Shown here piece by piece: positions 1 to 56,350 of a stretch of DNA of 64,000 nucleotides (the first letter of the stretch is position 1; each line of letters opens with the position of its first letter). Origin of the DNA: Monocercomonoides exilis PA203 (lineage: Eukaryota; Protista; Preaxostyla); NCBI GenBank assembly GCA_001643675.2, contig LSRY02000021.1:992001-1056000 (forward strand), in the 5' to 3' direction. The translations under genes were made by a program, and so were the position numbers. The notes under the pieces are model-generated. The model did no database searches. It was not told the DNA's origin and worked only from the letters and a program-made list of their open reading frames with translations.

Positions 1-2320
1 CATCAAATGTGCATCCATCATTCAGATGCCAAAAAGAAGAATTGTCTTTCACTCCATCTCCTCCTTTCAAACTCGAAATGGTCAATGAGGCAAAATCTGA
101 GCAAATGATGTTTCTATGAAGAGAAGGATATTTTTCTATATAAGTATTGTTACTCAAAAACTCTCCTTTCTCAATCGTCACTTTACCAGCGGACGCTGAT
201 AATCCACCTGATGAAGCATCAGAAATAATCACATCCTTCATCACCAATGAATAATTCGCTGAATTGCAAGTGATCCATTCCATTTGCATATTTCTTCAAT
301 ATTTTTATTTCTCTCATTTTCACTTTCTTTTGCAGGAACTCCAATATATTGGCATGAATCCATCGAAATTCCCTTTGCATTATTCATATCCATAATGCTT
401 CCTTTATCAAACACGGAATAACAGTTTGAACAAGTGCATTTAGAAAGCATTATTTGAGATGATGATAAAGAAACTGAAAGAACAGAAGCTCCTTCTGAAT
501 TCCTCGAACTATTGTTGAATGAAGAGCTTCCTCCTGAAACACTTACAGAAGTTGAGCTGTCAATCGAAATGATGCAACCTTCTGACAATTTCACTCCATC
601 AGCATCAATTCCATTCGGCACAACACTTCCACACTGCCCAATCTCAACAACATATCTTGTTGATTCAATCTGTTCCAACTTCATGTTTGTCAACGAAATT
701 TGATCCACGCTCAACAGAAAAGAAGACTTATTAAATGAAAGGAATGAGATTGAGCAATTATCAACATGAAGAATTCCATTTTCGATGCTCAACAATGTTG
801 AATTGAGAACAACAAATTCGATGTTTTCTGACTCCACCACAGAAGAAAAATTGACAAATAAAAGAGAAAGCTGTCCATTTGCTTCATAAACAATGGAACT
901 GCCTGAATACAAAAACGACTGGCAAAAATTGAATTTCAATCATTCAATCCGAACTTTCTCTGAGATTGTGACAAGATTTCCCTCATCGGTTATTGTTGAG
1001 TTCAGACACACCAAAGCAGCTGAGGGAGATTGCAATGAGCGAATAGTCACATCAAGAACATCACACTTCCCAATAATTTCTGTTTGCCCCAAGATCAACA
1101 GCTGCGAGTACAGAGATAGAATGATGTGCCGCACTCCAAAGCTCAATAAGTGGCATGGTGTGTCGAATTCTCCACATTGCTTGCTGTCTGCGCGATTGTC
1201 TGCAACTGATGACACAAATATCGTCTCACTCAGATATTTCTCAACCCTCAGGAGCAGATCTTCTTCATCCAGAAAGGAATCTGTTGTGCAGTCCCACATC
1301 GCCAGCTCTTTCACAAATGGTGCTCTGAAATCCAGCAAGAATTGCCCTTCAACTTTTTGTGCATCAATTGAGTGGCATCGAACATACACATCTCTCCCTC
1401 TCAATGCAGAGTTACCTTTGAATGTGAAATTCGACAACACAAAATTCAGAGGCTGCTCAGCTGTCGAGGTGAATTCCAGAAACAGCCACCCACCTCTTCC
1501 GGTTGTTGAACAGAAGCACTCAGAAATCGTGCAAAATGAGCAGTCAAATCTTCCTCTCTCATTCAACACACAAAACATCCCTCCTCCCTTTCCACACCTC
1601 TTTCCACCACATCCCTTCATCGTTGTGTTTCGAATCACCATTTTAAAAGGCTCATCGTTATCATTCCGAATGATGGGAATATTACTGATTGTGTTCTTGG
1701 TGACTTCTTCGAATGAGCTCCATTCAATAACAATATCTTGCTTATCTTCATTTCTCTCTCTGCTCTCTCTTCTTGAACTCTTTGCTATGCACAATCCGCT
1801 TGCTCCATCCAGCTCAATGCTCTTCATCGAAATGTTTTTGATTCTCAAAATCGTTGATGATAGCACAGAAATGACATCTTTTGAAAAGCAACGTGATTGC
1901 ATTGATGCAAATTCCAATAAAACTGCTCCTCCATCTGCTTTGATCATCCCATAGTTCATCATTTCTTCTCCACTCTCTTCATTTTTTGAGAATGAACAGT
2001 CCTTCAGAGTCAATAATCTTTCGCTTGAGCCAACATGCATCAAAACATTCACACCACTTGCGAATGAAGATGGTATCACAAACTGCATCAGTTCGAAAAT
2101 GGCAATTCCATCAGTCTTCATTACTGCTCCTTCTGCTCCTTCAAGCGATGAGATACATTCGAATGAGCACATGCTGCTCTCATCCGATTTTACTGATATT
2201 CCACTCGCATCAATACTTTTCTGCAGATATCCTTTTCCAATGATGTTGATATTCTTTTCATTTTCTTCGGGCAGTCTTGTCAACGAATGATCCATTGACA
2301 GACAAGGATAATCTGAGAAT

Positions 2321-2511
<191 letters not shown>

Positions 2512-4167
2512 TCACATCACAACCTTTGCTGCCAATAAATATCTCTGAGCCAAAAGTTCTCCAAAAATACACCAGCGGGATGGCATTTTCTGTATCACTT
2601 CCATCAAAGCCTCTCATGGAATCCAACGAAATATCTGACAGATGTCCAGATACAAATGGAAGAGAGACATTTGTGATGCTCTTTGTCAAGTTGAATGACT
2701 CAACAAACAGGTCATTTCCATATCTTGCAACATTCGGCTTGTCTTCCTCATAAACAGGGGATGAAATCACAAATGAAGAATACTCATCAATCAGCTTCAG
2801 TGCCATCCCTCCCCCAAACCCAATCTTCCGTTCTTCTGCTGGTGCAGTGCATCCCTTGAATGTGCACGAAATAATATTCATTTGAGTATTCTTTTTCAGC
2901 CGAGCATCAATAGCCCCTCCTCTTCTTTCATCAGCCAGCACTGAGCATCCGTCAAATGAACATTCTTCAATATTTATTTGTGTGTTCCTATATTCATCAT
3001 TGCTATTGTCAATGCTCACACACCCTCCATTTCCAGCTGCTCTTTCCATTTTTGTGAAATTGCTGTTCGTCATATTCATCCACTGAGTGTTCATAAACTC
3101 GGCCTCTGTGCTGCTTCCATGCAATAAGATCAATGGATTTCCACTCAAATTAATTGATGAAACAGATAACGAATCAACAGCCATTTTTCCAGACTCAACT
3201 GACAAGAACAGTAATGTCAAGTCTGATGATAAATATAGAAGAGAAAGATAGCATTGAGATGTGGGAAGTTATGAAGAGGAAGAAGAAATGAAAATGGAGT
3301 GAAGAGGAAGAGAAGGAGGAAAAGAGAACACAAATTTTGATAATTCTGCTTCAACACTTGCTGAAATCATCGTTGAATTGGAAATTGAATTTGAATCAGA
3401 GACTGTCCAGCCACTTTGATCATCATTTCCTCGGATTTCATGTTTCTGTCCAGCAAATGCCAATTCTTCGCTCATCAAAATCATTCCATTCACAACTACT
3501 TTCTTTTCTCCTGTTAATCGTGCGAGTGAGAGCTTCATTGTCAAACAAGGGAATTGGACAATTCCGCAATGAGAATGGTTAGATGCCTCGAAGTTGCTCA
3601 CAAAGATTTCTTCTGGGGTGGGAAGGAGATAGATGCACAGAGGAATGGTCACACTAGCGTTTCCATTCTCATATCCTCTCACCTTGTCAGCAGTATCTGA
3701 CGATGCCGTAACACACGAGATCTTTTGTGATTTTGCAGTCACTTCCAGATTCGGAGAAAGAACAAAGATATCTTTTCCCCACTTAGCCGTGTTTATCCCA
3801 AAGGAAGAAGAGATCAGGAAATTTGGATTTTCATTCAATAGTCGAAGGAGGATTCCTCCGCCAAGTCCATTTGTTGCTGAACAAAAGCATCCATCAAAAG
3901 ATCCGCTTTTCACTTTCACTTCGTTTTCATTCACAATGCACAACATCATCGATCCTCCATTTTCTGAATTTGTGCTTCCACATCCTTCAAAAGTGCTCGA
4001 ATTCAGATTAATGTTTGCTTTGTCATTGGAAAATGACATCACTGTTGCTCCGCTGACTGTTCTTTCAACTCTGTCAAAAGTGAACTCTAAAAGTGTCAAG
4101 GAAATCTCATTTGTTGAAGAAAATGAAAACAAGGAAACTGTGGAGATAGTCTTTGCCCAGTTCACAT

Positions 4168-4407
4168 GGGTGATTCTTTTTGAAAAGTCACAAATATTTA
4201 ATTTACAAATAAATCAAAAATTTCATATTTTGATCAAATTTCGGTTCCCGCTCATGTAACTTTACCAAAGCGGAGTATATAATTTGACAACGCTATTTTA
4301 CACATTCCTGTGAAGTTGTATGAGCGGGAACCGAAATATGATCAAGATATGAAATTTTTGATTTTTTTGAATATTAAACATTTGTGACTTTTCAAAAAGA
4401 ATCACCC
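4168..4407. mobile_element. 240-bp hairpin MITE with GGG termini and 4-bp TSD (ACAT), Sola-like
   Basis: TIRs are gggtgattctttttgaaaagtcacaaa ... tttgtgacttttcaaaaagaatcaccc, with ACAT at 4164-4167 and 4408-4411. Removing the element and one TSD restores the host frame (LINVQNGMFQMEHVNWAKTIS). Confidence 0.93.
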
Positions 4408-6328: not shown

Positions 6329-9300
6329 ATGGAAAACATGGAAAAGGAAAGTGGAATGAAGACAATTCAGATTGAAGGATCAACCATTATAAGAGATTCA
6401 TTCAATGTGTCCAATTATTTAATCAAAAAGGATTCGAAGATGGGAGAAGAGAATGTGAAGGCAATATTGAATTTTGAAAAATCAATTGGAAGCCAACCGG
6501 AATATTTCATGGTGAATGATGATCATCTTGAATTAACCAACATCCAACTTCAACTTGCCTCGGGATTTGAGAACTCAGCCAAAGAAATTGTTTCAAACAA
6601 AGGAGGAGATTTGGTGATAAGTGAATGTTCATTCCATTCAGAAGCAGGAGTGAACAATGGATTTGATTGTGTATTTGTGGATGCAATTGGAGGAAGTGTG
6701 GAAGAGAATGATGGAGGGTCTCACACACAAGATTGGCTTGTTGGATGTTCGGGTCTTCTGACAATGAAGAGACTTTCATTTGTTGTGAAAGGACAGATGA
6801 ATTCAAGAAGAAGTGCATTCATTCACTCAACGTCAACTCTCAGTGTGACGAACTGTTCAGTCTTATTTGAGAGTGGGGCAATGACTGATGGAAAGATAGG
6901 ATACAGCATCATTGATATGGCAGGAGGAGAATTAATTATGAATGGATTTGTGATCGAAGGGTCAGTGACAATGAATGGGAAATCTCCAATAACGCTGACA
7001 AATGGAGCTCAAATGGAGATTTTGAACAGCAGAGTGAGTGGAGTGGAAATGACTGGAGGAAGTGGGAGTGGAGGAGGATGTTTGAATGTGGAGATGAAGG
7101 AAGGAGGAAATGTGAATATTGAAGAAAGCAATTTCTCATCAAGATGCTCAGGTGGAAATGGGATGAAAGGAGGAGGGATGATGATATCAGTGGGGAATGT
7201 GGGGAACTTGGAAATGAAAAATGTGAAATATTCAGGGTGTGAAGTGCCATCAGAGGATAAGGAAGAGAGAGGAAGAGGAATTGGAGGAGGGATATTTGTG
7301 AAGCTGGCAGATGAGATGGGAACATTTGTGATGGAAGGGATGGAATTTGAGGGATGCAATGCCTGGAAAGGGAAGAATATGTTTGCGTCAGGATGGAATC
7401 TGAGAGAAATTGTGAACAAGGAGCACCTGAAATGGGAAATGAATGATGAGGAGTTGGATTTATTGGATGAGTTGTGTGGATGGGAGAGGAAGACGACAGG
7501 AGAGGAGGGGTATGTGATTCCATTGGTTGTGTATTTGTGGGGTAATTGGAGCGGAAATGGGTTTGCTTCGAAAGAGAAAGGAGGAGACTTCAGTGGGTGT
7601 GGATATTCAGAAGCACCATGTTCGTCGATTGATCATCTTGTCTTACTGAGATACGAACCACTTGGAGAAGGGGAATCACACATCAAGATTGTGGGATCAG
7701 GTTCTGTTCAAAAAGCAATATCATTTTTGTTATCATCATCTTCAAAAACTTCAGTTGTATCAATTGAGGGAGAGAAAGAAGGAACAGTTCTGAAAGTGAG
7801 TGAGGGAGGAAGAAACGAAGGCAAAGAAGAAGGAGAAAATAGAGAGGCAATGGTTGCTTCAGAAGTGATCCTCTCATTTGTGAATGTTTCATTTTCTCTC
7901 CCAAATGTGCTTGTCCACTATCTGGCATTCCTCAAATCATCATCAATGAATGGTGCCCTTTCTGTGAAAAGCTGTTCATTTGCTTGTGAGGATCCTTTAA
8001 AAGAAACGTGTTTCTGCTTGGTGAAAGTGGATGGAGGGAGTGTGACAATTGAAGATTGTGCTCTGAAAGAATTCCATTTTTCACAAGGTTTTGTGGAATT
8101 GTCTTCAGATGTGAAAGTGGCAGACGTGATGAATCTGTCAATCACCAACACAAGCATTTCGGGAAGGAGTCTGATTTCGCTCAGTGAATCTGCTCTCTCA
8201 TTAGCAAGCTTATTGAAAGGAGCAACGATGCTGAGAGGCAAAGAGAATGGAGATGGAGTGATGTTGCTGAGCATCAACAGCTCATCATTCACAAGCATCA
8301 CATGCAATGATAGCAGAGCTGCAATTCTGAATGGTGACTCATTTGATGGTGGAATGAAGTGCTGTGTGGAAAAGTGTGTGACGACAAAGTGTCTGAGCGA
8401 GAAGAGCGAAGAGGGAGGATGGATGAAAGTGAGTTTGAGGAGTGGAGGAAGTGAGCTGAAAGTGAGTGGCTGTTCGTTTGGGATGTGCATTTGTTCCACA
8501 GTGAAGGGGAGAGGAGGAGGGCTGATGATTGATGCATCTGGCCTGGGTGAAACACAAGAAGGAACAGAGGATACACCGCCTTTGGGGATAATGATTGAGA
8601 GCACCAGATTCACAATGAATGATGCATTTGTGGGGAAGGATGTGTTCATCCGGTGCAAGTGGATTGAAAAGCAGATCAATGAGAAGCTGTTCTCGCTGGA
8701 CTTCAGCCAGGATGCTCTGAAGTCGAACAACTCGATTTGTGGAAGCGACGAAGAGAAAAGAGATATTGATCTGATCCCGCTGATCACATTCTATTATGGC
8801 CAGCAGGTGTTTGTGGAAGCGAATGGGAGGGATATCAGACAGTGTGGAGAGCAGACGAATCCATGCAAAAGCATCAGCCACGGAGTGCCTCACATTCAAA
8901 AGGGGATCATGAATGTGATTTTTATTGATGGAGAAGGGGACATTGGAGGAGAATGTGTGATTGGAGATTTGAGTGTGAAGTCAATGAAGAAGATGAAGGC
9001 GACAGTCCATTACAATGCAACAATTCAAGAGATGGGAAATGAAGGGGCTGTGATTGTGTTTGTGAATGAGAGTGTGATGGAGAAGTGTTTGTTTGTGTTT
9101 GGAGAGGCATTTGAAGGGGTTGAGGAGAGTGCTTTGAAAGAGAAGGATGGGAGATTGGAGATTTCAGATTGCTTTTTCAGCTCGTCAGCAATGGATCTTG
9201 TGATGAAGAGCATGATTCTTCATGTGGAGAGAGGAGAGATGAAGATGAGCGAAACGTTGTTCAGTGGAATTCATTCAGCTGTGCAACTTCTGTCATTCTG

Positions 9301-9547
9301 TGGAGAATCTTGTGTGTCAATTGCTGAGACACGAATATTGAATATCGAGTGTGAGGGAGAAGTTGTGAGAGTTGGGGGAAAAGCGAAGGCAGAGATGAAG
9401 GAAATGAAGTTTGAGAATATGTCAGTGGCTAATGAAGGAAGCGTGATGAAGATGGATGGAGCTGATAGGGGGTTGTGTGTGCTGAACTGTTCCTTTGTGA
9501 AATGCCGGAGCACAATCAAGAGAGGAAGGATGATAAGGATATGTTAG
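6329..9547 (+). CDS. 1072-aa internal fragment of the Cys-rich surface/receptor-like family (transposon cargo, copy 1)
   Basis: Uninterrupted ORF with CGYSEAPC, CGEQTNPC, GRGGG and GKDVF motifs. Homology continues past both ends (CRSEEEPCQTM* upstream; degenerate to ~9740). No signal peptide or TM segment is evident. Confidence 0.7.
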   Translation: MENMEKESGMKTIQIEGSTIIRDSFNVSNYLIKKDSKMGEENVKAILNFEKSIGSQPEYFMVNDDHLELTNIQLQLASGFENSAKEIVSNKGGDLVISECSFHSEAGVNNGFDCVFVDAIGGSVEENDGGSHTQDWLVGCSGLLTMKRLSFVVKGQMNSRRSAFIHSTSTLSVTNCSVLFESGAMTDGKIGYSIIDMAGGELIMNGFVIEGSVTMNGKSPITLTNGAQMEILNSRVSGVEMTGGSGSGGGCLNVEMKEGGNVNIEESNFSSRCSGGNGMKGGGMMISVGNVGNLEMKNVKYSGCEVPSEDKEERGRGIGGGIFVKLADEMGTFVMEGMEFEGCNAWKGKNMFASGWNLREIVNKEHLKWEMNDEELDLLDELCGWERKTTGEEGYVIPLVVYLWGNWSGNGFASKEKGGDFSGCGYSEAPCSSIDHLVLLRYEPLGEGESHIKIVGSGSVQKAISFLLSSSSKTSVVSIEGEKEGTVLKVSEGGRNEGKEEGENREAMVASEVILSFVNVSFSLPNVLVHYLAFLKSSSMNGALSVKSCSFACEDPLKETCFCLVKVDGGSVTIEDCALKEFHFSQGFVELSSDVKVADVMNLSITNTSISGRSLISLSESALSLASLLKGATMLRGKENGDGVMLLSINSSSFTSITCNDSRAAILNGDSFDGGMKCCVEKCVTTKCLSEKSEEGGWMKVSLRSGGSELKVSGCSFGMCICSTVKGRGGGLMIDASGLGETQEGTEDTPPLGIMIESTRFTMNDAFVGKDVFIRCKWIEKQINEKLFSLDFSQDALKSNNSICGSDEEKRDIDLIPLITFYYGQQVFVEANGRDIRQCGEQTNPCKSISHGVPHIQKGIMNVIFIDGEGDIGGECVIGDLSVKSMKKMKATVHYNATIQEMGNEGAVIVFVNESVMEKCLFVFGEAFEGVEESALKEKDGRLEISDCFFSSSAMDLVMKSMILHVERGEMKMSETLFSGIHSAVQLLSFCGESCVSIAETRILNIECEGEVVRVGGKAKAEMKEMKFENMSVANEGSVMKMDGADRGLCVLNCSFVKCRSTIKRGRMIRIC

Positions 9548-15349: not shown

Positions 15350-16891
15350 CTACAAACTAATAGGAGATTGCTCGGTTCCAATATTTGTTGATTTAATAAA
15401 ACTTCGAAGTATTTTTCGATTATGAATTGCATTTGTTTTATCTTTTTTTTTTTTCTTCATTTCTTCAATCTTTCTCTCCTTTTTTTCACAAAACTTTATG
15501 GTTTCAAACTCCATCGTTTTCAACTGTTGGCTATCGTTATTTTTCAGAAATCTTCCGTCACATGATCTATATCTTATCTTTTTCTTCTTTCTTGCAGTAT
15601 TGCAATCTGAGTCTGATGAGTATATATCATCTCCAGTTTCAACTTTTGTTTCTGTTTCTTTCTCTTCTTTCTCTTCTTTCTCTTCTTTCTCTTCTTTTTC
15701 TTCTTTTTCTTCTTTCTTTTCTTCTTCTTCTTCCTCTTCTTTATCTTCAATTTTTCTTCTTTTGAAATTTTCTGTTTCATTTGTTTCAATCAATTTCTTT
15801 GATAATCTTTTTTTCTTTAACATTTCATCAAGTTCATTTTCATCAACCATTTCATAATTTCTTCTTTTTTTCATTTCCTCTTTTTTCAAATAATAAGAAG
15901 ACAATTTGAATTTTCTTTCTTTATTCAAAACACTTATCATATTTGCAGCACTTTCGTCATTGGCACGTAAAAAAACATCCAAACTTCTCTTATCAATCTT
16001 TGATAATTATTTCATGAAAGTTGTTGGAGTCAGTCTATTGTTATATCGATACTGAAACTCATAGTCATATTCCTTTGTCTTTAAATATGTTCTCCCTCGT
16101 TTTGGAATATGATTTTTCAGATGAGACCATATGCTTTCAATTGCTTGTGTGAAAACAGTTGGATTTTCCGGTTTGACAAAATTAAGAGTTTGATTTACGC
16201 TGTCTATTGTGAAACCATTTTCACTGATGCAATTATATGCTGACCATTTATCAGACATGATCGTTGCTGATCTTTCAATGTTTTTTTTAACGAAATATAA
16301 AATCGTGTCTGCTTTTCTATCAGGAAGAAATTCAACAATCAGTTTTTGAGGCTTTCCTTTTTCCTTTCTTTCAATAACACCCCATAACCACTGCTGTTCT
16401 TTGCATCTCCCAACACCGTTCTTTCTTTTGTGTATTAAAGTTTCATCTATTTCCACTATTCGATCTTTTCCGATTTTTTCCATTTCGAATGTTTCAAAAT
16501 AACAGCATATTCTTCTCATCTTTTCATTAAATTTCACAACAGTTTTGTTTGTAATATTCAGCTCTAAAGTGACTTCCTTTATTGAATGCTTGTACCAAAA
16601 ATGATATAATAGAGATGCAATTTTCAAAGGTGATAAGTGAAATTCCATGAATATTGAATCATAACACCAACTGAAAATTCTTCCACATTTTGAACATCTG
16701 TATGCATAGTAATCAATTTCTTTTTTGTACAGCTTCAGCTCCATCTTTCTGTCGCATTTCCAACATTTCCTATATTGTCTGATCAATCAGTATTTAGATA
16801 GCAATTCAACTGCAAGATGGTTTTTGTTGTTCGATCGAATAGTAAACTCACTGAAAGTTAATTCTTTTTCCAATAATTCGTTCTCACTCAT
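15350..16891 (-). pseudogene. Merlin/IS1595 DDE transposase B (514 codons, two in-frame stops)
   Basis: ATG at 16891; CWKC...CSKC; VEIDET, IMSDKWSAY, TQAIESIWS and YEFQYRYN motifs. Stops at 16787-16789 (TGA) and 16007-16009 (TAA). ORF 15350-15982 is the in-frame K/E-rich tail ending QSPISL*. Confidence 0.93.
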
Positions 16892-17514
16892 GTATTTGAT
16901 TAAATAGTTCTGCAAATGATCAAAAATTTAAAATTTTGGATATTTATAATGGAAAATTTTCAAAAAAAAACATGCATTTGGAATTTGATTTTTCACTTCT
17001 TTTTGACATAAAAAGCAAATATTTTTTTTTAAATAATTTGCATAATTTTTTTCATGGTCTCATTACGAAAAAACAAAAATAAATAATAAAAAATAAACAT
17101 GATCACAGCATTGTCTTTTTTTATAAGAACAATGAGCGCACAATTACAAAAGGTTAATCATGTGTTATTATTTTGTTCATTAATAAAAAAGTTTGGATTT
17201 GTTTTCCATTTTGTTTAATTTCAATTGTTTGCTCATCACTGCACTCATTTTTTTCCAAACATATAAAAACACATTAGAATCATATTTTCTTTTGTTTCAT
17301 ATTATCATTCTGGTCTTTCTCCTAAAGAATTGTTTGGAAAGAATATTTTCTTCTCAACATTTTTCCATCCGCACTCCACACATATGATAATACTCGAGTT
17401 ATGCATTCTTCCTTTAAGTCTCTGTTTTAACTGTTATCGCGAATCATCATGAAAAGAATTGTGCCCGATGGAATGCTCTTGAATCATACCCGATTCACAT
17501 CCATCATCATATCC

Positions 17515-21799: not shown

Positions 21800-24700
21800 C
21801 TAACATATCCTTATCATCCTTCCTCTCTTGATTGTGCTCCGGCATTTCACAAAGGAACAGTTCAGCACACACAACCCCCTATCAGCTCCATCCATCTTCA
21901 TCACGCTTCCTTCATTAGCCACTGACATATTCTCAAACTTCATTTCCTTCATCTCTGCCTTCGCTTTTCCCCCAACTCTCACAACTTCTCCCTCACACTC
22001 GATATTCAATATTCGTGTCTCAGCAATTGACACACAAGATTCTCCACAGAATGACAGAAGTTGCACAGCTGAATGAATTCCACTGAACAACGTTTCGCTC
22101 ATCTTCATCTCTCCTCTCTCCACATGAAGAATCATGCTCTTCATCACAAGATCCATTGCTGACGAGCTGAAAAAGCAATCTGAAATCTCCAATCTCCCAT
22201 CCTTCTCTTTCAAAGCACTCTCCTCAACCCCTTCAAATGCCTCTCCAAACACAAACAAACACTTCTCCATCACACTCTCATTCACAAACACAATCACAGC
22301 CCCTTCATTTCCCATCTCTTGAATTGTTGCATTGTAATGGACTGTCGCCTTCATCTTCTTCATTGACTTCACACTCAAATCTCCAATCACACATTCTCCT
22401 CCAATGTCCCCTTCTCCATCAATAAAAATCACATTCATGATCCCCTTTTGAATGTGAGGCACTCCGTGGCTGATGCTTTTGCATGGATTCGTCTGCTCTC
22501 CACACTGTCTGATATCCCTCCCATTCGCTTCCACAAACACCTGCTGGCCATAATAGAATGTGATCAGCGGGATCAGATCAATATCTCTTTTCTCTTCGTC
22601 GCTTCCACAAATCGAGTTGTTCGACTTCAGAGCATCCTGGCTGAAGTCCAGCGAGAACAGCTTCTCATTGATCTGCTTTTCAATCCACTTGCACCGGATG
22701 AACACATCCTTCCCCACAAATGCATCATTCATTGTGAATCTGGTGCTCTCAATCATTATCCCCAAAGGCGGTGTATCCTCTGTTCCTTCTTGTGTTTCAC
22801 CCAGGCCAGATGCATCAATCATCAGCCCTCCTCCTCTCCCCTTCACTGTGGAACAAATGCACATCCCAAACGAACAGCCACTCACTTTCAGCTCACTTCC
22901 TCCACTCCTCAAACTCACTTTCATCCATCCTCCCTCTTCGCTCTTCTCGCTCAGACACTTTGTCGTCACACACTTTTCCACACAGCACTTCATTCCACCA
23001 TCAAATGAGTCACCATTCAGAATTGCAGCTCTGCTATCATTGCATGTGATGCTTGTGAATGATGAGCTGTTGATGCTCAGCAACATCACTCCATCTCCAT
23101 TCTCTTTGCCTCTCAGCATCGTTGCTCCTTTCAATAAGCTTGCTAATGAGAGAGCAGATTCACTGAGCGAAATCAGACTCCTTCCCGAAATGCTTGTGTT
23201 GGTGATTGACAGATTCATCACGTCTGCCACTTTCACATCTGAAGACAATTCCACAAAACCTTGTGAAAAATGGAATTCTTTCAGAGCACAATCTTCAATT
23301 GTCACACTCCCTCCATCCACTTTCACCAAGCAGAAACACGTTTCTTTTAAAGGATCCTCACAAGCAAATGAACAGCTTTTCACAGAAAGGGCACCATTCA
23401 TTGATGATGATTTGAGGAATGCCAGATAGTGGACAAGCACATTTGGGAGAGAAAATGAAACATTCACAAATGAGAGGATCACTTCTGAAGCAACCATTGC
23501 CTCTCTATTTTCTCCTTCTTCTTTGCCTTCGTTTCTTCCTCCCTCACTCACTTTCAGAACTGTTCCTTCTTTCTCTCCCTCAATTGATACAACTGAAGTT
23601 TTTGAAGATGATGATAACAAAAATGATATTGCTTTTTGAACAGAACCTGATCCCACAATCTTGATGTGTGATTCCCCTTCTCCAAGTGGTTCGTATCTCA
23701 GTAAGACAAGATGATCAATCGACGAACATGGTGCTTCTGAATATCCACACCCACTGAAGTCTCCTCCTTTCTCTTTCGAAGCAAACCCATTTCCGCTCCA
23801 ATTACCCCACAAATACACAACCAATGGAATCACATACCCCTCCTCTCCTGTCGTCTTCCTCTCCCATCCACACAACTCATCCAATAAATCCAACTCCTCA
23901 TCATTCATTTCCCATTTCAGGTGCTCCTTGTTCACAATTTCTCTCAGATTCCATCCTGACGCAAACATATTCTTCCCTTTCCAGGCATTGCATCCCTCAA
24001 ATTCCATCCCTTCCATCACAAATGTTCCCATCTCATCTGCCAGCTTCACAAATATCCCTCCTCCAATTCCTCTTCCTCTCTCTTCCTTATCCTCTGATGG
24101 CACTTCACACCCTGAATATTTCACATTTTTCATTTCCAAGTTCCCCACATTCCCCACTGATATCATCATCCCTCCTCCTTTCATCCCATTTCCACCTGAG
24201 CATCTTGATGAGAAATTGCTTTCTTCAATATTCACATTTCCTCCTTCCTTCATCTCCACATTCAAACATCCTCCTCCACTCCCACTTCCTCCAGTCATTT
24301 CCACTCCACTCACTCTGCTGTTCAAAATCTCCATTTGAGCTCCATTTGTCAGCGTTATTGGAGATTTCCCATTCATTGTCACTGACCCTTCGATCACAAA
24401 TCCATTCATAATTAATTCTCCTCCTGCCATATCAATGATGCTGTATCCTATCTTTCCATCAGTCATTGCCCCACTCTCAAATAAGACTGAACAGTTCGTC
24501 ACACTGAGAGTTGACGTTGAGTGAATGAATGCACTTCTTCTTGAATTCATCTGTCCTTTCACAACAAATGAAAGTCTCTTCATTGTCAGAAGACCCGAAC
24601 ATCCAACAAGCCAATCTTGTGTGTGAGACCCTCCATCATTCTCTTCCACACTTCCTCCAATTGCATCCACAAATACACAATCAAATCCATTGTTCACTCC

Positions 24701-25018
24701 TGCTTCTGAATGGAATGAACATTCACTTATCACCAAATCTCCTCCTTTGTTTGAAACAATTTCTTTGGCTGAGTTCTCAAATCCCGAGGCAAGTTGAAGT
24801 TGGATGTTGGTTAATTCAAGATGATCATCATTCACCATGAAATATTCCGGTTGGCTTCCAATTGATTTTTCAAAATTCAATATTGCCTTCACATTCTCTT
24901 CTCCCATCTTCGAATCCTTTTTGATTAAATAATTGGACACATTGAATGAATCTCTTATAATGGTTGATCCTTCAATCTGAATTGTCTTCATTCCACTTTC
25001 CTTTTCCATGTTTTCCAT
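21800..25018 (-). CDS. 1072-aa Cys-rich receptor-family fragment (cargo, copy 2)
   Basis: Translation is identical to 6329-9547. Confidence 0.7.
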   Translation of the reverse strand: MENMEKESGMKTIQIEGSTIIRDSFNVSNYLIKKDSKMGEENVKAILNFEKSIGSQPEYFMVNDDHLELTNIQLQLASGFENSAKEIVSNKGGDLVISECSFHSEAGVNNGFDCVFVDAIGGSVEENDGGSHTQDWLVGCSGLLTMKRLSFVVKGQMNSRRSAFIHSTSTLSVTNCSVLFESGAMTDGKIGYSIIDMAGGELIMNGFVIEGSVTMNGKSPITLTNGAQMEILNSRVSGVEMTGGSGSGGGCLNVEMKEGGNVNIEESNFSSRCSGGNGMKGGGMMISVGNVGNLEMKNVKYSGCEVPSEDKEERGRGIGGGIFVKLADEMGTFVMEGMEFEGCNAWKGKNMFASGWNLREIVNKEHLKWEMNDEELDLLDELCGWERKTTGEEGYVIPLVVYLWGNWSGNGFASKEKGGDFSGCGYSEAPCSSIDHLVLLRYEPLGEGESHIKIVGSGSVQKAISFLLSSSSKTSVVSIEGEKEGTVLKVSEGGRNEGKEEGENREAMVASEVILSFVNVSFSLPNVLVHYLAFLKSSSMNGALSVKSCSFACEDPLKETCFCLVKVDGGSVTIEDCALKEFHFSQGFVELSSDVKVADVMNLSITNTSISGRSLISLSESALSLASLLKGATMLRGKENGDGVMLLSINSSSFTSITCNDSRAAILNGDSFDGGMKCCVEKCVTTKCLSEKSEEGGWMKVSLRSGGSELKVSGCSFGMCICSTVKGRGGGLMIDASGLGETQEGTEDTPPLGIMIESTRFTMNDAFVGKDVFIRCKWIEKQINEKLFSLDFSQDALKSNNSICGSDEEKRDIDLIPLITFYYGQQVFVEANGRDIRQCGEQTNPCKSISHGVPHIQKGIMNVIFIDGEGDIGGECVIGDLSVKSMKKMKATVHYNATIQEMGNEGAVIVFVNESVMEKCLFVFGEAFEGVEESALKEKDGRLEISDCFFSSSAMDLVMKSMILHVERGEMKMSETLFSGIHSAVQLLSFCGESCVSIAETRILNIECEGEVVRVGGKAKAEMKEMKFENMSVANEGSVMKMDGADRGLCVLNCSFVKCRSTIKRGRMIRIC

Positions 25019-26149
25019 CCATTTCTACATCGTTTGGCATGGTTCTTCCTCGCTTCTACATATTACAACATCAAATTCACTGTTAGAGTTAAATAAATCA
25101 AATTCAAACAATTCCTTTTTTAATGGTAAAAAAAACCAAACTTTTATTTAGTACATGTTTTTATTTCTCAATATTGAGCTATTTTGTGTAAGTAATGTTT
25201 AATTTTGCAACATTGATTTATTTAAGCATGCTATGATCGAGCCTAATACAAAAAAATATTAATATTCCAAAAAACAAGAAAAAATTCGTATGAAAATAGC
25301 TAAACAAATATTTATTTGATGAAAAAAACTATATAAAACCTTTTGCGTTCCATTGCTACCAATTTTGAAATTTTAGTCTTTCAGCTTAACAACATGGAAG
25401 TGAAAATGCATGCGTTTGTGTCACTGATAATAAAAGCTGTTTTCAATATAAAACAAGTACGCATATAATAATATACTTATATTAACATATAAAAGTGAAC
25501 GAATTACATACTTTTAGGTTCTATTTAAACCAAAACAACATATTCAACATTTTATATAATAAATAATTTACTTGTGGGTTAGATCAAAGATATTTAATTA
25601 AATTTTTTATTTATGATTTATATTTTTTGTGATAAAATTAACAAATAAAATAAGTGTATATAATAATGTAAACACTTTTGATTCGTAAAAATCACATTTT
25701 CTTTTAAATTTGAATATTTTTCAATGAAATTCATGTTTTTATGGGTCATTTTTCAAAAATCATTTTTTTCAACAAGAAAAATTTTTTTCGAAAAATCGGT
25801 CCATAAAAAGTTTTTAAATAATTATTATCTATTAATTTGTTATAATTTGAGGGTTTAAAAAGGCAAATTGCAAAATGAACGCGTTTGAACCTATGCCGAT
25901 TTCCCATTCGCATTTATCTTCTTCAAACCTTATTGCTCCTATTATATTGATGCACTGGTCAAAACTTTGTAAAAATGGTGTCTAACAGCATTTAAACAGC
26001 AGTCTGTGTAAAAATCAAATTTAATTGCTCGCATGCAACTTGTCCCTCAGTCCCTGATTAGATGCTACAATTACAATATTCAAACTTTTTGGAACTTGCT
26101 TTCAAAGTCAAGGACAATTTAGTTATCTTTGCTGAGTGGAGACAATGCC

Positions 26150-26743
26150 TCATCCGACGCCAAGCATCCATTTTCTCACTTTTCTCTTCTCTTCTCTCTC
26201 CTCCAAAATAGCCTCTCCCAAATAAACGTGATGCTCATCATCCCGCAGAGCTGTATTATCCCTTCCACCACCGGCTTCCCCACAATACACTCGTGTTCTG
26301 AACACAGATTCACCACAGCCTCCACCACCGTCATCATCACCAGATAGTCCCGCCAGCTCCCATAAGCACTCTCATCAACCAGCCTCAAAAACCTCAAATG
26401 CAGCGATTTCACATCCAGAATCTGCTCTTCCTATTTTCTCCAAATCAATTGTGGTGCCCTTTTCCTTTTACTCCTCATTCATTACTACACATTTCATTGA
26501 TATTTGCTCCTGTTTCACATCTTTCCCCCTCCATCTGAATTTCAGTCTGAAGTGATGCCCAAATACAAATTTCCTTCTTCTTCTTCTGATTTCCTGTTCT
26601 CCTGTCGAATGCCATCTGCTGGAGAAGAATTGCTCACTTCAGGTTCCACTGAATACTTTTTGCCTGCGCTCGCCTCAGTCTCTGTCCTCGCATTCACAAA
26701 CCTCAACCGACTCATTCCAAGCGCCTCCACGACCAGCGGCGTC
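26150..26743 (-). pseudogene. Distal fragments of the IQCH-like pseudogene interrupted by the element at 26744
   Basis: Joining 30740 onward to 26735 downward restores LEEAMAPLVVEALGMSRLRFVNA. Region 26176-26430 looks like a paralogous piece. Confidence 0.5.
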
Positions 26744-29700
26744 GGCATAGGTGTAAATTGTACCACTTTCAGTTTACATTTTTTCAAGATTTGAATATTA
26801 TGGCGTTAATTTATCCAATTTAACTAAGCGATTCAAGGAGGGAAATTTCGAAATTCGACAAAAAATTTTCTCTCTGAAATTCAAAAATTTCGACACCCAT
26901 AATATTTTTATTTTGATCATATTTTATTGAAATTTCTTTTTCTTGCTTTGCAAAGATCAAATAAATTTGTCGATTCAATGGAGCAAGAAGAAATATAGCG
27001 TTTAATGTTTGTCATGGTAAATTTTCGTAAATATTATTTTTTATATAGCTTATTTTTATCGATTTGATAATTTAATTATATACTAGTATTAGCTAAATAA
27101 TAAGTTTTCACTTTCAAGATAAAATAGATAACAACTTATATGAAAGGAATTATCATGATTGATTTAAAAAATATTTGTAATAATAAGATTTTTATATGTG
27201 TTTAATAATTATTGATATATATTCTATTATTGGCAATGTATTCGTTGGAACTGGGATGAATTTCTGTTTATGAAAGGATGAAGGAAAAGCTAGATTGGGC
27301 AGATGTATTTGTTGAGTGAGGTTAAGGAGCAGTTGGCATTTGGAAAGGTGAGAAAAGAAGATAGAGATGGAGAACATTGGGATGGTGTGGAGCTTGTTGC
27401 AACAAGAGAGGGAAGATGAAGGAATGGGAGCATTTGATTGATATTATGCAATGATTTGGATGTTGCGGGATGTCTTCGAAAATTCACAAAAAAAGTCATG
27501 ATTTTTTGTGGATAACCTTTTAATTCTATATTATATATTTTTTTATAATCCACATTGTTGTTTTCTTTTTCATTCCATCTTCTTTTTCGTTCGTTGCTGT
27601 TTGCGGTTTGTTATTGTTTGATCAAATTTTTATCTCTGTTTTTTACTGAGTTTTCACAAAAAGCTCAATTATAACGATTCATCCATGTTTTATTTTAACT
27701 TTGCAAAGCTACTAACGTTGCCCAATACAATTATTAAAGACATTAGTGCGAATTAGTGAAAACTTGCACAAATAAAAAACAATTAATTCAATTATTCACC
27801 TTTTTCAAAGTTTTATTAATTAAAGATAAAAAAATTGCAATAAAGAAATTAGGAATTCAAATGATTCGGAAAAAAAATTTCAAAGCTGGTTCTGAAAATT
27901 GCTTCTGCCTGGATCAGGAATTATGTACCACTCTATCTGCAGTGTGTGATTCGATATTTGTGGTGCAGAGTTCGAATTTATTTTTTTTTCCCCTTTAATA
28001 GCAATTATTAGAAACTGTGGTGGAGATGGTACAAATAGCAAATCCAAGATTGGATTCTCTCCTTCAGATCTGGGATTTACCGTTATTTCAACCGGCAAAA
28101 ATATTTCGATTCCAACAGACATCCAAACACATTTGTCGACAAACATACTATTGCGTTGTCGATGAAGAAGAAAGAGAATTCATCCCAATCACACTTGCAT
28201 TTCTTCCTTTCCCCATAATTGAAATCTTCTTTTCCCCAACACGAATCGTTGTTCCTTCGCTCACATGCCTCCCAACCAGTCTTGTGATTGCCGAGCCCGG
28301 CTGTTTAATGCTCGAACTCACCGCATGCCCCACGGTCTTGCACGGTGCTGACTCACTCATCCCACACAGGTTGTTTGCATCATTCCCACTCACTCCAACA
28401 TACCGATCCTTCATCCCTTCCTTCAACCAGCCCTTCTTTTCTGTATATTGACAATTATAATAACGGCACACTCTCGTATCATTGCTGTTCGTTGTGTACG
28501 ATTCATAGAACGGGCTAGCCGATGAAAAGAAATTGTAATTATCTTCAAAATACACATCACGGACATATAGAGTGGAATTTATGCAACTTCAATCGTAGAA
28601 GAAGAGAAAATAACATTAATTGAAGTCAATTGAAGCTGTTTGTTGGTCTGAATAAAAATATAATATTCCGCCATATGATACAGCTGAACATGAAATGAAC
28701 TGGAGGCTCCTCATTTTGAATTTTTCAGTAACAGTTACACAATACGTCCCTCCACCATTATAATTTGTGAGCGTATGCGAAGTGAATGAGCACTCAAACA
28801 CGCACGCACTCTCCCCTCCTTCAATTTCTGTTCCAATGCATCCTGTTCCTGAAACCTGAAAATTATCAAGATCAAGCCCTCATCCATATCCATTTGCTTT
28901 GCAATTCTGGAATTCACATCCGCTGATTTGAACACATAATGAAATCGCATAAACACACATTCCTCCACCAAATTGATTTTGAGCAATACAAGAATTATAA
29001 AAGTTGTTTCTGATGTCCACAGATTTGATTGTATGTGCCATGATGGCTCCTCCATCCCAACTTGCGTAACAGTCATTGAATGCACAATGCGAAACGAACA
29101 TTTCTCCAGACTTAAGATTATGCATATAAATCGCACCGCCATTCGAACCGCTGTCAGAACCGTCTTGAACATTTCCAGTAGCCTTTGAACCACTCCATTC
29201 ACACCAAGTGAACGTATTCGCTATATTTTCTGTCATGCTTTGTCTCTCTGGGCGTTTCTTATTGTCTTCAGTTCCTTCACATACAACATTCCTTGTCCGA
29301 CAACACCCAACAAACGAGGAATTTGAGGTGGTCAAAGAGGTCAAGGGGTTGCTGAGTGAAGGAACAATCCCTCCATCATAAACCTCACAAACAGAAGTGA
29401 ATGAGCAACTGCTCATAAAACATGTGGTTTGGGTTGACATAGTGGCTGAAGACGAGCACAGATCAGGTGCTGTTGAGATGTTGAAAAATGTCAGTTGAGA
29501 AAGGGATATAAGATGGATGGAAGGTGAAGCGAAATATTGGCAAAAAGATGAGAAATAAAATTCATTCACAGAAGTTCTTCCTTTCCCTTCACTTATTTGC
29601 CACATGATCCTTTGTGCTATATCGTAAAATATCCCATTGAGCTTGAATTCACCTTTTTCTGCCTCTTCTGCTGCTGCTTCCAAAAAGATTTTTGTAAATA

Positions 29701-30739
29701 AAAAATTCCACAAAAATTCCTTTTCCCATTCTCTTCAGTTTTTTCCATTTCGCTCATCTGCCAAACACTCTTCAGTTGCCCATTTCTCCCAATTTCTTCC
29801 AGGAATGCTCATAAAAAAAGGCAGTGCTTCCACATCCCATGTTTCATGCTCCCCCGGCACTTCTGACAACACCTGATCGTATCACGCATCAATCAAATCA
29901 AAAATTAAAAAATACAAATAAAAATAAAAAATGGAACATGAAGAAAATGAACAAACAAGAATGAAATACCTCCACAATTCTTCATTTCCCTTCACTCCCC
30001 TCATCCCCTGTTTGCCTCTCTCCAAATACCTCTCGATCCAACATCATTCACTTCAAGCACCACACCACACCACGCCTTCGCCTTTCAAATCTAATTCCGA
30101 ATAAAGTAAAATAAAATGTTGTTTTCACCCGCTCTTCCATTGCCCATTCTACTTCACTCTCAGCATTCTTCTCTCCATCTTCCTCCATCCAGCCCTCAAT
30201 CCAAATTAATGCAGTTGGATTCCGATCTTCATTTTGTCGCAAACCTTTTTTGTGCAGTTGAATTTAAAAGGGATAAAAAACAGCATCAAAAAAAAGTTAA
30301 TAAGCAATAAAAAATAATTAGCATACGCAGCATATGTTTTCTTCCGTTTTTGCTTCGATGGAGTTATTGAATCATAACACTTTATTTTTTTAAAAAAGGT
30401 GGCATTGCGTATTTATTGAATTTATCGAAATAAGCTATATAAAAAATAATATTTACGAAAATTTACCATGACAAACATTAAACGCTATATTTCTTCTTGC
30501 TCCATTGAATCGACAAATTTATTTGATCTTTGCAAAGCAAGAAAAAGAAATTTCAATAAAATATGATCAAAATAAAAATATTATGGGTGTCGAAATTTTT
30601 GAATTTCAGAGAGAAAATTTTTTGTCGAATTTCGAAATTTCCCTCCTTGAATCGCTTAGTTAAATTGGATAAATTAACGCCATAATATTCAAATCTTGAA
30701 AAAATGTAAACTGAAAGTGGTACAATTTACACCTATGCC
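26744..30739. mobile_element. Non-autonomous cargo-carrying Merlin element ('Pack-Merlin'), 3996 bp
   Basis: 312-bp TIRs (26744-27055 and 30428-30739) start ggcataggtgta. The 8-bp TSD is gcggcgtc/gcggcgcc (26736-26743; 30740-30747). No transposase inside. Confidence 0.92.
28148..29713 (-). pseudogene. N-terminal-region fragment of the Cys-rich receptor family (cargo)
   Basis: ORFs 28880-29713, 28616-28801 and 28148-28555 carry SCSFTSVCEVYDGGIV, FTWCEW, NGGAIY and CGMSESAPC; they are frameshifted relative to each other. Confidence 0.75.
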
Positions 30740-31580
30740 GCGGCGCCATCGCTTCTTCCAGCTTCCCCTGGTTCTCTTTGATTCTCTCCACAAACTATTT
30801 GTGCGCTGTCGGATGCCTGCCTTTCTCCTCATTCCCATCACCTCCCTCTTTTCTTCCCCTTTCTCCTTCCTCTACTTCTTCTCGCTCCTCCAGCACAGCC
30901 AGTGCAATCGCTGCAGGCGATAAAACCACATCCTACATCTTCAGCCCCACAGCATCCAACCCATTATCCACAATCTCCCCCACTTCACACACAGCAACCC
31001 CTCGCCCCATCACTTCCTCGTCCAGCTTCACCACCACACGCCTCGACTGTTGCGATCGCCATATTTGCAGCAACGGGTCAAACAGATCGTAGATCGACGG
31101 GAACGCATTCTCATCTGCCGCTGCAAAGATCCGCTTGCTTCCCGACTTCGTGCCCACGTACGCTGCAAGCAAAGGAAGCTGCACCACCAGTGGAACCGAA
31201 AGCATCACCGAAAGTGCCACATCGTACGCACACACAACACCACCCATATGGAATCCCCCACAGAGTCACAACATGTCCCCACATTGTCTTTTGCTCTCTC
31301 AATAACAACAAATTGTGATTTGCAAACACTTCAGCTGCTTTTTATGCAACAATCTTCAACCACCTCTTGACATTGTCCATGGCTGATGCTGAAGTGAATA
31401 AAGCCGCCACCTCCGAGGAATCCGAAAGGCCAATCATAGGTGTCGATGATGAAGATGAAGATGAATTATCTTCTCCTGACGACTTCTTCTCTAATCTGTT
31501 GCGTTGCACAAACAGCGATGAAGCATACGAAGAACTCAAAAAGTGATGAGTGAAGAGATATCTGTTGTTCTTCTCCATAT
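30740..31580 (-). pseudogene. IQCH-like (IQ motif containing H, ATP-grasp-like region) gene fragment
   Basis: TKSGSKRIFAAA...IYDLF...VVKLDEEVMGRGVAVC resembles the IQCH motifs STKSGSKRIF and FKxDxEFGGRG, recalled from memory rather than searched. Confidence 0.6.
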
Positions 31581-45426: not shown

Positions 45427-46668
45427 TTATTTTCTTTTTCCATTTTCACGTTCAAAGGGGTCAAATTCATCACTTGTTTCATCGTCATCATTCTTAATTT
45501 TTCTGAATTTTCTTTTCACTTTTTTCTCCAAAGGCAATTCTTCTTCTTCAATAACCTTTTCATTTTCTTCATTTTCTTCAATTTCCTTTTCTTTTTCTTC
45601 AATTTCTTCAATTTTCATCTTGTGCTTTTCATTATATTCATCCCATTCATCAAGAAACTTTTCTTTTGTTATTTCTTTTCCGAAGAAGTCGAAACAATGA
45701 GAATGAGAAGGAATGAAGTATTGAGAAGACTGAGGAAGTTTCATTAGAACCGATCCAGATCCATTGCTGAGGACTCCGTTGTTAATGAAGGCTTTTTTGA
45801 TCACAGATGGGGTTATTGCTGTGTTAAGGGCTTGTGGCAAAACATCTACAACAGTTGTTCTTTTTGAAGATGAGGAGGTGGATGATGGAGAGCTGTAATT
45901 GTTTGAAAGCTCTGACTTCAACACTGCAAATACGCCTCTGTCCAGTGACTGAGATATGTGTGTGGTATGTGGAACGAAGGTGACGACGTCTATTTCTGCT
46001 TCCTCGAACAGTCTCCATATCGTCAGATCTGCCCGCGATGAGTGTGAATTTAGGAGAAGAAGGCAACGATGAGATTCTTTTAGAATTCGCTTTATTCTGT
46101 CAATGATAACTGGCAGCAGGACTGTTAAGGCGTATTTTTTGAATGACGTTTTATCCATCCAGCCGTTTGTGTTTGGCCAAATGTCAAGCGACGGCGTTAA
46201 CAGTGTTGTCAGTTCTTTCGGAAAAGTTGCGCTCGGCCACTGCACGACAGACGGAAGCGAGAAGCCATCAGCAGCGATTCCAACAACGAGAGCGGCATTC
46301 GGCATCCGTTTGGCAGTCTTTTTGAACCCAGCTTGCTCATCTGCGGGATGAACAACACCACATGACGAAGTTGGAATTCGAAGCGAAGATTCATCGACGT
46401 TGAAGATTAATTCCTCGGGATATATGTTTGCATCGTGTAATGCTTGTAATTTTGCGAACCACGGCTTTTGGACTTTCTGGCAAGATGCTGCAAGTCTGTT
46501 AATATCAACTTGCTTTGGAAGCGATGACTTCAATTCCGGATGGCGCTTTATGAAGGCGTGAACCGTCTTTAGAGTAACTGTCTTTTTCTTCTTTTCTTCA
46601 TTTTCTCCTTCTTCTTCACTATCGTTAATTGTATTTTCCATCTTAATACAAATTAATATACAATTCAA
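45427..46668 (-). CDS. pogo/Tigger-type DDE_1 transposase, probably inactive
   Basis: IFNVDES, NGWMD, LLLLNSHSSR (catalytic D replaced by N) and FVPHTTHISQSLDRGVF; acidic tail. Confidence 0.82.
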   Translation of the reverse strand: MNCILICIKMENTINDSEEEGENEEKKKKTVTLKTVHAFIKRHPELKSSLPKQVDINRLAASCQKVQKPWFAKLQALHDANIYPEELIFNVDESSLRIPTSSCGVVHPADEQAGFKKTAKRMPNAALVVGIAADGFSLPSVVQWPSATFPKELTTLLTPSLDIWPNTNGWMDKTSFKKYALTVLLPVIIDRIKRILKESHRCLLLLNSHSSRADLTIWRLFEEAEIDVVTFVPHTTHISQSLDRGVFAVLKSELSNNYSSPSSTSSSSKRTTVVDVLPQALNTAITPSVIKKAFINNGVLSNGSGSVLMKLPQSSQYFIPSHSHCFDFFGKEITKEKFLDEWDEYNEKHKMKIEEIEEKEKEIEENEENEKVIEEEELPLEKKVKRKFRKIKNDDDETSDEFDPFERENGKRK

Positions 46669-55564: not shown

Positions 55565-56350
55565 GGCTAAGCCATTGCTTCTTCAAGCTTCCTCTGTTTC
55601 TCTGTGATTATTTTCACAAACCATCTGCATTTTGTCGGATAGCCTCCATTTGTCTTATTCCCATCACCCACCTTTTTTCCTCTCCTTTCTCCTTCCTCTG
55701 CCTCTTCGCGCTCCTCCAGCACAGCCAGTGCAATCGCTGCAGGCGATAAAACCACATCCTACATCTTCATCCCCGCAGCATCCAACCCTTTCTCCACAAT
55801 CTCCCCCACTTCACACACTGCAATCCCTCGCCCCATCACTTCATCACTTCCTCGTCCAGCTTCACCACCACACTCACGACTGTTGCGATCGCCATATTTG
55901 CATCGGCTCGTCAAACAGGTTGTGGATCGAAGGGAACGCATTCACATCTACGGCTGCAATGATCCGCTTGCTCCCCAACTTCGTGCCAACTAACACTGCA
56001 AGCGACGGAAGCGGTGCCACCAGCGGAACCGTAAGCATCGCCGAAAGCTCCACATCATCTGCACACACAACACCCCCACACAGCACCCCCCGCCCCGTCA
56101 CAACACATCCCCGCAGCAGCTGAAGCACTCGCAGCGACAGCTGCATGTGCTGCGCATACACATCAGTCACCTCAGGCACCACAATCCACAGCCACCTCTC
56201 GATGTCATCCATCGCTCCTGCCGAAGTGTATGACACAGCCACTACCTAGGCATCCGAATGGTCAATCGCATGCACTGAAGATGGCTGATCATCTTCTGTC
56301 GCCTTCTACTCTTCGCTTCTCTGGATCTTGTATTGCGAAAAAGATAAGCA
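55565..56350 (-). pseudogene. IQCH-like gene fragment, copy 2
   Basis: TKLGSKRIIAAVDVNAFPSIHNLFD; homologous to 30740-31580. Confidence 0.6.

Follow-up and report, generated by a model that had tools for sequence, protein, structure and literature searches.

The DNA analyzed here, called the window throughout, is a stretch of 64,000 nucleotides from Monocercomonoides exilis PA203 (contig LSRY02000021.1, positions 992,001-1,056,000), and the element in question occupies positions 26744-30739 of it. We consider this element to be a non-autonomous DNA transposon of the Merlin superfamily that carries a decayed beta-helix gene, and whose cargo has been exchanged with paralogues; to this interpretation as a whole, exchange included, we assign a probability of about 0.82. 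Genome searches were made in the M. exilis assembly (82.3 Mb, 101 contigs, designated C below); the paper on the Oxford Nanopore Technologies (ONT) assembly gives the same genome size and contig count, with 4.5% DNA transposons and 35% unclassified repeats (PMC8767320). From left to right, the locus is composed as follows.

26100-26735: left flank, belonging to a dispersed repeat (182 candidate loci)
26736-26743: left copy of the target-site duplication (TSD), gcggcgtc, differing by a single C-to-T change from the right copy and from the paralogous empty sites
26744-27055, plus strand: left terminal inverted repeat (TIR), 312 bp, 100% identical to the right TIR
27056-27292: subterminal sequence, matched (query 1-222) only by TIR-bearing loci and restricted to this transposon family
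27293-27571, minus strand: segment of about 280 bp, 73-78% identical to many loci without these TIRs (contigs C42, C80, C51)
27572-28153, minus strand: 3' region, 80-95% identical among the closest sister copies
28154-29593, minus strand: cargo coding region, a single-frame pseudogene colinear with MONOS_16280 residues 111-595
29626-30205, minus strand: 5' flank of the cargo gene, 86-91% identical to at least 30 loci without these TIRs
30206-30427: transposon-specific subterminal sequence, not common to loci without TIRs
30428-30739, minus strand: right TIR, 312 bp
30740-30747: right TSD copy, gcggcgcc, matching the paralogous empty sites
30748-31400: right flank, the same dispersed repeat, with 395 candidate loci and a paralogue inside the window (55571-56231)

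A repeat search of the window detected inverted arms of 328 nt at 26743-27070 and 30413-30740 (98% identity), the outer 312 bp of which, 26744-27055 and 30428-30739, are 100% identical on opposite strands. Both ends of the element read GGCATAGGTG, the right one as the reverse complement, read CACCTATGCC, so that the 5'-GG termini regarded as a Merlin feature are present at both ends (PMC8101967). The octamers outside the TIRs, gcggcgtc (26736-26743) and gcggcgcc (30740-30747), match at 7 of 8 positions. The coordinates, the TIR length and the 7/8 TSD given by an earlier reading made from the sequence alone were exact, and its statement that the interior holds no transposase also stood, as the transposase of the partner element described below (L061) gave no tblastn match inside the window element. 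This combination of TIRs and a TSD without a transposase is one that the element has in common with Pack-TYPE transposons.

In the genome, the window TIR has 71 candidate sites (40 scored), and its 29-bp terminal motif was found 27 times in forward and 25 times in reverse orientation, while the control gave 0. The sister copies number about 25; at least 17 paired copies exist, most with perfect 8-bp TSDs, and 16 paired loci were retrieved for comparison with the window copy. Four of them (L031, L032, L033 and L035) align with the window element across essentially its whole 4 kb at 79-81% identity; the other copies align piecewise at 70-85%. The TSD is perfect (8/8) in L031, L032, L035, L037, L038, L041, L043, L044, L059, L060, L061 and L064, matches at 7/8 in the window copy, L033 and L045, and is weaker or absent in L034, L036, L040, L042 and L046; no target consensus is apparent among the TSDs of the copies. 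The sequence-only reading had proposed a genome search for the TIR with a listing of the TSD of each copy, and the 12 sister or related copies with perfect duplications establish that 8-bp TSDs are found in other copies as well.

One copy, L046 (C13:683665-684831), is a 1,167-bp internal-deletion derivative made of the first 966 bp and the last 222 bp of the element, with 97-98% identity to the window copy, which implies that the window sublineage was active fairly recently. L046 has no matching TSD (CAACAATG versus CCCCTTCC), and a distant beta-helix family member lies beside it. As for the window copy, it is dead and decayed, an ordinary member of the transposon family without a special role. 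Two 3.3-kb relatives without transposase, L059 (C9:1028279-1031615) and L060 (C40:559945-563277), are flanked by the perfect TSDs TCTTTATG and GAAGAGAG, respectively; identity between their TIRs and the window TIR is about 70%, and both contain, in inverted orientation, some 250 bp related to the cargo gene's 3' end.

Concerning the interior, a single tblastn match in one frame on the minus strand (28154-29593) covers residues 111-595 of MONOS_16280 (P0002) at 60% amino acid identity, with three in-frame stops and no frameshift. Since this single-frame match is accompanied by the 5' flank, the interior is one gene unit with its own 5' flank, and the mosaic of Cys-rich receptor fragments that had been read there is ruled out; the chimeric gene fragments considered a mark of Pack-TYPE elements are likewise replaced here by a single colinear gene in one frame. 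In L034 the alignment to MONOS_16280 runs to its C-terminus (residue 699), from which it follows that the ancestral cargo was a near-complete member of the short type of the family. The region 27572-28153 is probably the degenerate C-terminal part of the coding region together with the 3' untranslated region, and the segment 27293-27571 can be considered, from its matches elsewhere, a putative part of the captured gene unit or of its 3' region. Two sister copies, L042 and L035, retain open frames of 538 and 532 codons and are annotated as MONOS_4821 and MONOS_11206.

All public homologues of the cargo are uncharacterized MONOS_* proteins of M. exilis, one of which has a precomputed PF13229 domain. 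Pfam searches of the cargo open reading frames (ORFs) gave no family above threshold, the only hit being a sub-threshold match to Chlam_PMP. An AlphaFold model of the L042 cargo, built with 45 homologues, is all-beta over residues of about 45-325, where the predicted local distance difference test (pLDDT) score is 61-93 and mostly above 70. When this model was compared by VIA-align, Z scores of 18.4-14.3 over about 250 residues were obtained with 50 beta-helix chains (AlgG epimerase, tailspikes, pectate lyases); a Foldseek search of the PDB gave no match at E<=0.001, so the fold call rests on VIA-align. The cargo is thus a predicted Cys/Gly-rich right-handed parallel beta-helix of the pectate-lyase-like type, and this, with Pfam silent and no transmembrane or signaling domain found in it, gives no support to the receptor identity proposed before.

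The beta-helix family is very large, with 2,278 candidate loci in the genome and open frames of 600-4,400 amino acids, most of them of 2,000-4,400. The roughly 580 bp at 29626-30205 are 86-91% identical to at least 30 loci absent among the TIR matches listed, often in inverted pairs, and 83-88% identical to most sister copies; at these loci the common 5' flank ends about 207 bp short of the position of the TIR. As a separate observation, the short-type genes of the family commonly form palindromic pairs, convergent and equally scored, with 6-11 kb between the two members (contigs C42, C53, C71 and C80), and the conserved 5' flank lies on the outer side of each gene of these pairs.

The window coding region and its 5' flank are matched at hundreds of loci absent among the TIR matches listed, with a best coding match of 80%, and we rate capture of a host gene, followed by exchange, as likelier than the opposite course of events. 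In the latter, the beta-helix gene would be an old passenger of Merlin elements, much of the apparent host family would descend from transposon-borne copies, and the transposon would have driven the expansion. We regard this as unlikely, even if several data point in its direction. The partner element L061 and its relatives L062 and L063 carry on the opposite strand a passenger of about 1,536 codons, which in L061 (L061:2331-6938, minus strand) is interrupted by two stops. This passenger is 46% identical over 762 amino acids to the 1,072-aa ORFs that stand beside two divergent Merlin transposases in the window, a part of it matches the C-terminal region of the cargo-family protein P0055 at 41%, and a cargo-family fragment lies inside L063. 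Moreover, the cargos have a ratio of nonsynonymous to synonymous divergence (dN/dS) below 1, and genes of the family often stand in palindromic pairs with conserved outer flanks. Against a passenger origin, the family has approximately 2,278 candidate loci whereas the ends of this TIR family number only about 52, similarity in the common 5' flank is lost about 207 bp short of the TIR position at loci without TIRs, and most ORFs of the family, with 2,000-4,400 amino acids, are much larger than the 4-kb element could hold.

The 1,072-aa ORFs, at 6329-9547 (plus strand) and 21800-25018 (minus strand), adjoin window transposases that are 46-52% identical to that of L061; a Pfam search of the 1,072-aa ORF gave no match. 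The resemblance of their products to the L061 passenger suggests a conserved second gene that may travel with several Merlin lineages. L062 (C74:69871-81348) and L063 (C7:1625522-1636938), for which partial sequence was considered, are about 11.4 kb long with the same ends, and contain a partial or broken partner transposase and large passenger frames. L063 could be an intermediate between the autonomous and the 4-kb forms.

The cargo and the transposon around it were then compared in 78 pairs formed by 13 copies. The identity of the outer TIR ranges from 0.78 to 0.985 while that of the coding sequence (CDS) stays at about 0.73 (r=0.19), with a mean of 0.728 in pairs whose TIR identity is at least 0.94 and of 0.725 where it is below 0.85. 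From this analysis it is evident that the coding region of the cargo and the backbone of the transposon have different histories. The same is visible within single pairs: in a five-way alignment, L031 and L032 share TIRs at 94-98% and the transposon-specific segment at 96%, but their coding regions at only 70%. In bins of 100 bp, these two copies are 92-100% identical up to about 27930, except for one bin at the inner edge of the TIR, then 52-85% across the coding region, 82-86% in the 5' flank and 92-99% from about 30100 on, while in the pair L031/L033 the breakpoint falls elsewhere, near 28330-28430. Sharp breakpoints that differ between pairs imply that the cargo has been exchanged with paralogues.

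The relationships of the coding regions were examined also outside the transposon copies. The best matches of the window CDS are loci absent among the TIR matches listed, at 79-80%, and its matches to the sister copies are lower, at 72-75%. When a protein tree was drawn as a test of a single capture, the cargos fell among family proteins matching none of the retrieved transposon copies and were not monophyletic, with the reservation that the tree was built from query-anchored pseudogene translations and from family proteins of 296-941 aa only, and that the details of its topology are weak. Pairs of cargos have dN/dS of 0.2-0.47 at synonymous divergences (dS) of 0.6-1.2, and their differences look like those between functional paralogues and not like decay after insertion. 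Inside cargos that are about 70% identical, L035 and L041 have an exact stretch of 128 bp in common. This stretch belongs to a tract of 150-200 bp, at element positions of about 2461-2640 of L035, that is 88-100% identical to L041 and resembles a recent short patch of gene conversion.

The most likely cause of this decoupling, as far as a mechanism can be inferred, is gene conversion or template switching with paralogues. The cargos would have undergone repeated gene conversion, or template switching during the repair of the gap left by excision, with hundreds of paralogues, and the partners in this exchange would be those members of the family that have the conserved 5' flank and 3' end in common.

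A different explanation is that the backbones were homogenized, that is, that TIR and subterminal DNA was copied between elements in transposition-linked repair while the coding regions display the true, old age of the copies. This is improbable in our opinion, somewhat more so than a passenger origin, but part of the evidence agrees with it. In 11 of the 13 copies the two outer 200-bp TIR segments of the same element are 99-100% identical, when copies differ from each other by 2-22%, and the inner TIR of the window copy (26944-27055 and 30428-30539) is 27% off its closest relatives, symmetrically in both arms; such symmetric differences between copies indicate that arm-to-arm copying within elements does occur. 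A close donor for the coding regions was also not found in the assembly. On the other hand, homogenization would have to extend over about 1 kb of neutral interior at either end and to stop at different points of the gene in different pairs. Moreover, the copies with their own TSDs inserted independently, and recent transposition is the simplest explanation for their young backbones. Exchange of the cargo remains our preferred explanation for the two histories.

The assignment to Merlin is based on the partner element. L061 (C40:833747-840620) is 6,874 bp long, with the TSD CACAAGAA and 207-bp TIRs, and its 518-aa ORF matches PF12762 (DDE_Tnp_IS1595) at E=4.2e-15, scoring 56.5 bits where the cut-off is 27. 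When its TIR is compared with that of the window element, identity is 89.7% in the first 124 bp, including 30 of the first 30, and the sequences are unrelated beyond. The transposase lineage of L061 counts one intact and four partial copies in the genome, which contains at least 575 candidate IS1595-type DDE segments. Because the TIR termini are common to an element encoding a PF12762 transposase, it is well supported by sequence comparison that the window element belongs to Merlin as a non-autonomous member; the superfamily proposed earlier from the 8-bp TSD and the GG ends is in this way supported through the termini shared with L061.

The 312-bp TIRs would keep the terminal sequence recognized by an IS1595/Merlin-type DDE transposase encoded elsewhere, and the enzyme from C40:833747-840620, the only intact partner, would excise the element and paste it with an 8-bp staggered cut. 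On these grounds we infer that the C40 transposase may be the one that mobilizes it.

Merlin elements have TSDs of 8 or 9 bp and a conserved terminal 5'-GG, and in strain PA203 at least seven Merlin families with more than 100 copies and 8-bp TSDs have been described (PMC8101967). The window element shares with the superfamily (Feschotte 2004) and with these M. exilis families (PMC8101967) the 8-bp TSD, the 5'-GG termini, a DDE_Tnp_IS1595 partner and the host species. The published families have TIRs of 23-29 bp and include only transposase-bearing copies, and the term non-autonomous is unused in that description, whereas here the TIRs are of 312 bp, the transposase is missing and a gene other than a transposase is carried (PMC8101967).

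A further question is whether the element could be Mutator-like or hAT, superfamilies that likewise have long TIRs and 8-bp TSDs. Pack elements of the Mutator-like type (Pack-MULEs) have long TIRs, GG termini and TSDs of 8-10 bp and typically capture genes. However, the only transposase found between TIRs with these termini is of the IS1595/Merlin type, and Merlin families with 8-bp TSDs are published for this very organism (PMC8101967). An assignment to MULE or hAT was rejected on the basis of these shared TIRs, and we consider it very improbable.

The element is flanked on both sides by a dispersed repeat, for which the genome search gave 182 candidate loci with the left flank and 395 with the right one. 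At 10 or more other loci the homologues of the two flanks overlap by exactly 8 bp, as for example at C7:483801-483808, C58:754968-754975, C5:82065-82072 and C34:1004190-1004197. Three paralogues (L067, L068 and L069) are continuous across the junction and contain one octamer each, ACGGCGCC, GCAGCACC and GCTGCGCC, respectively. The empty-site paralogues that the sequence-only reading suggested looking for are therefore present, at least ten with the exact overlap and three reading through, and so is the homologue of the right flank that it placed at 55565-55760: the right flank has 86% identity with 55571-55873 in its first 300 bases, and over the longer interval, 55571-56231, the identity is 80%. 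Read-through at the empty sites implies that the target was GCGGCGCC and that the left TSD copy changed from C to T later. The element inserted at GCGGCGCC within a copy of the dispersed repeat, with a later C-to-T change in one of the duplicated octamers.

It had also been claimed that the empty site restores the reading frame of the target. In-silico excision does open frames, of 195 aa on the plus strand and 82 aa on the minus strand, but as evidence this cannot be used: open frames exist on both strands, and in six aligned paralogues of the target repeat the variable sites are not in excess at third positions, so frame restoration is not diagnostic. A Pfam search of the ORFs of the target repeat gave no match. 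The target is a repeat of 180-400 copies without coding signal and not a demonstrable gene.

Empty sites with a single octamer exclude two independently inserted ends around resident DNA. That the structure is not an insertion at all, consisting of two solo ends or of a local inverted duplication around resident sequence, is next to impossible, because, even in a genome rich in perfect palindromes not made by transposition (such as the one with 7.2-kb arms at 5450-12620/18727-25897), at least 10 paralogous empty sites join the flanks through a single 8-bp site and the same interior recurs between the same TIRs at 17 or more unrelated places, which have TSDs of their own. These empty sites, and the repetition of the interior with individual 8-bp duplications, support also the earlier proposal that the window element moved as a unit.

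Several points weigh against our interpretation. In the assembly no donor above 80% was found for the swapped cargos of L031 and L032, whose best non-self matches are at 78-80%, so that recent whole-tract conversion from a surviving paralogue is not demonstrated; fine-scale exchange with many donors, lost donors, homogenization of the backbones or another diversifying process are possible. It should be noted also that loci were taken as outside transposons solely by their absence among the TIR matches listed, and that the sharing of TIRs is the sole basis for the proposed mobilization by the C40 transposase. The read data examined were assembled (Logan) contigs, and excision was not seen in them. 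Contig joints from 26737 to 30746 carry the inserts AGCA or AGAA, both with 21-nt sides; the AGCA insert at the joint reproduces the empty site of the paralogue L068, and excision was rejected as the source of these joints in favor of cross-mapping paralogues. Finally, RNA contigs cover only short pieces of the window copy, at 95-99% identity, with no clear expression.

The element can be compared with Pack-TYPE transposons, that is, Pack-MULE and Pack-CACTA (PMC6379663, PMC8903248), with which it shares the non-autonomous TIR structure, the TSD, a gene in the interior and the movement of the cargo together with the ends. For the Pack-TYPE elements template switching in gap repair has been proposed as the route of acquisition, and the same route is proposed here. 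In contrast to the plant elements, the one studied here is a Merlin and lives in a metamonad protist; it carries a single near-complete gene, 5' flank included, instead of fragments of several genes, the same type of cargo is found across the whole family with its coding region decoupled from the backbone, and no exact parental gene was found for it. The Pack label used by the sequence-only reading thus holds for the TIRs and TSD without transposase and for the gene in the interior, but not for a cargo that is one near-complete family member, nor in view of autonomous relatives that also carry passengers.

A second comparison concerns the trypanosome variant surface glycoprotein (VSG) genes and the Plasmodium var genes, which are variant surface-gene families that diversify by segmental gene conversion. 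The likeness consists of a hypervariable coding region set between conserved flanks, of short tracts that are identical in members otherwise diverged, and of paralogues that number in the hundreds to thousands. M. exilis, however, lives as a gut commensal, some cassettes lie inside a mobile element, and the likeness comes from the sequence pattern and not from surface location, switching or antigenic function.

Other mobile sequences are present in the window. A near-perfect palindrome (5450-12620/18727-25897) has arms of about 7.2 kb that are 99-100% identical and a spacer of 6.1 kb. Its outer ends start with GGCATAGGTT, which is Merlin-like and has 9 bp in common with the studied element, and the 8 bp outside them, gaatggag and gatttccc, are not a direct duplication, the flanks looking inverted. 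Each arm contains a 1,072-aa ORF and a Merlin transposase, and a third Merlin transposase of the window lies at 15968-16903 (minus strand). The 413-aa ORF at 45427-46668 (minus strand) matches DDE_1 (PF03184, E=7.5e-12), as expected for a pogo/Tigger-type transposase, a second superfamily of DNA transposons in the window. An inverted repeat of 376 bp (32113-32488/32744-33119, 99% identity, 255-bp spacer) is possibly a small foldback element or similar to a miniature inverted-repeat transposable element (MITE).

Merlin elements in M. exilis and the capture of genes by TIR elements in plants were already known, and the added interest of this locus is the decoupling of cargo and backbone. In the literature searched we found neither gene-carrying Merlins nor a link between Merlin and gene capture. 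Most documented cases of non-autonomous DNA transposons carrying genes come from plants (MULE, CACTA and related superfamilies), and a Merlin example in an amitochondriate protist extends gene carriage to another superfamily and to another eukaryotic supergroup. The independent evolution of the cargo offers a concrete system for the study of cargo exchange with a multigene family, a process that may help to explain the large fraction of unclassified repeats and the expanded gene families of this genome.

As a tentative and speculative extension, to which we give clearly less credit than to its alternatives taken together, Merlins could be both vehicles and recombination partners of a hypervariable beta-helix family of about 2,000 members, with cassettes, delimited by the conserved 5' flank and 3' end of the family, that would swap coding sequence with chromosomal paralogues through post-excision repair and then scatter. 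If this were true, the near-perfect symmetry of the long TIRs would result from the same arm-to-arm copying, and the transposon would help a family to spread and diversify that may form a sizeable part of the 35% of unclassified repeats.

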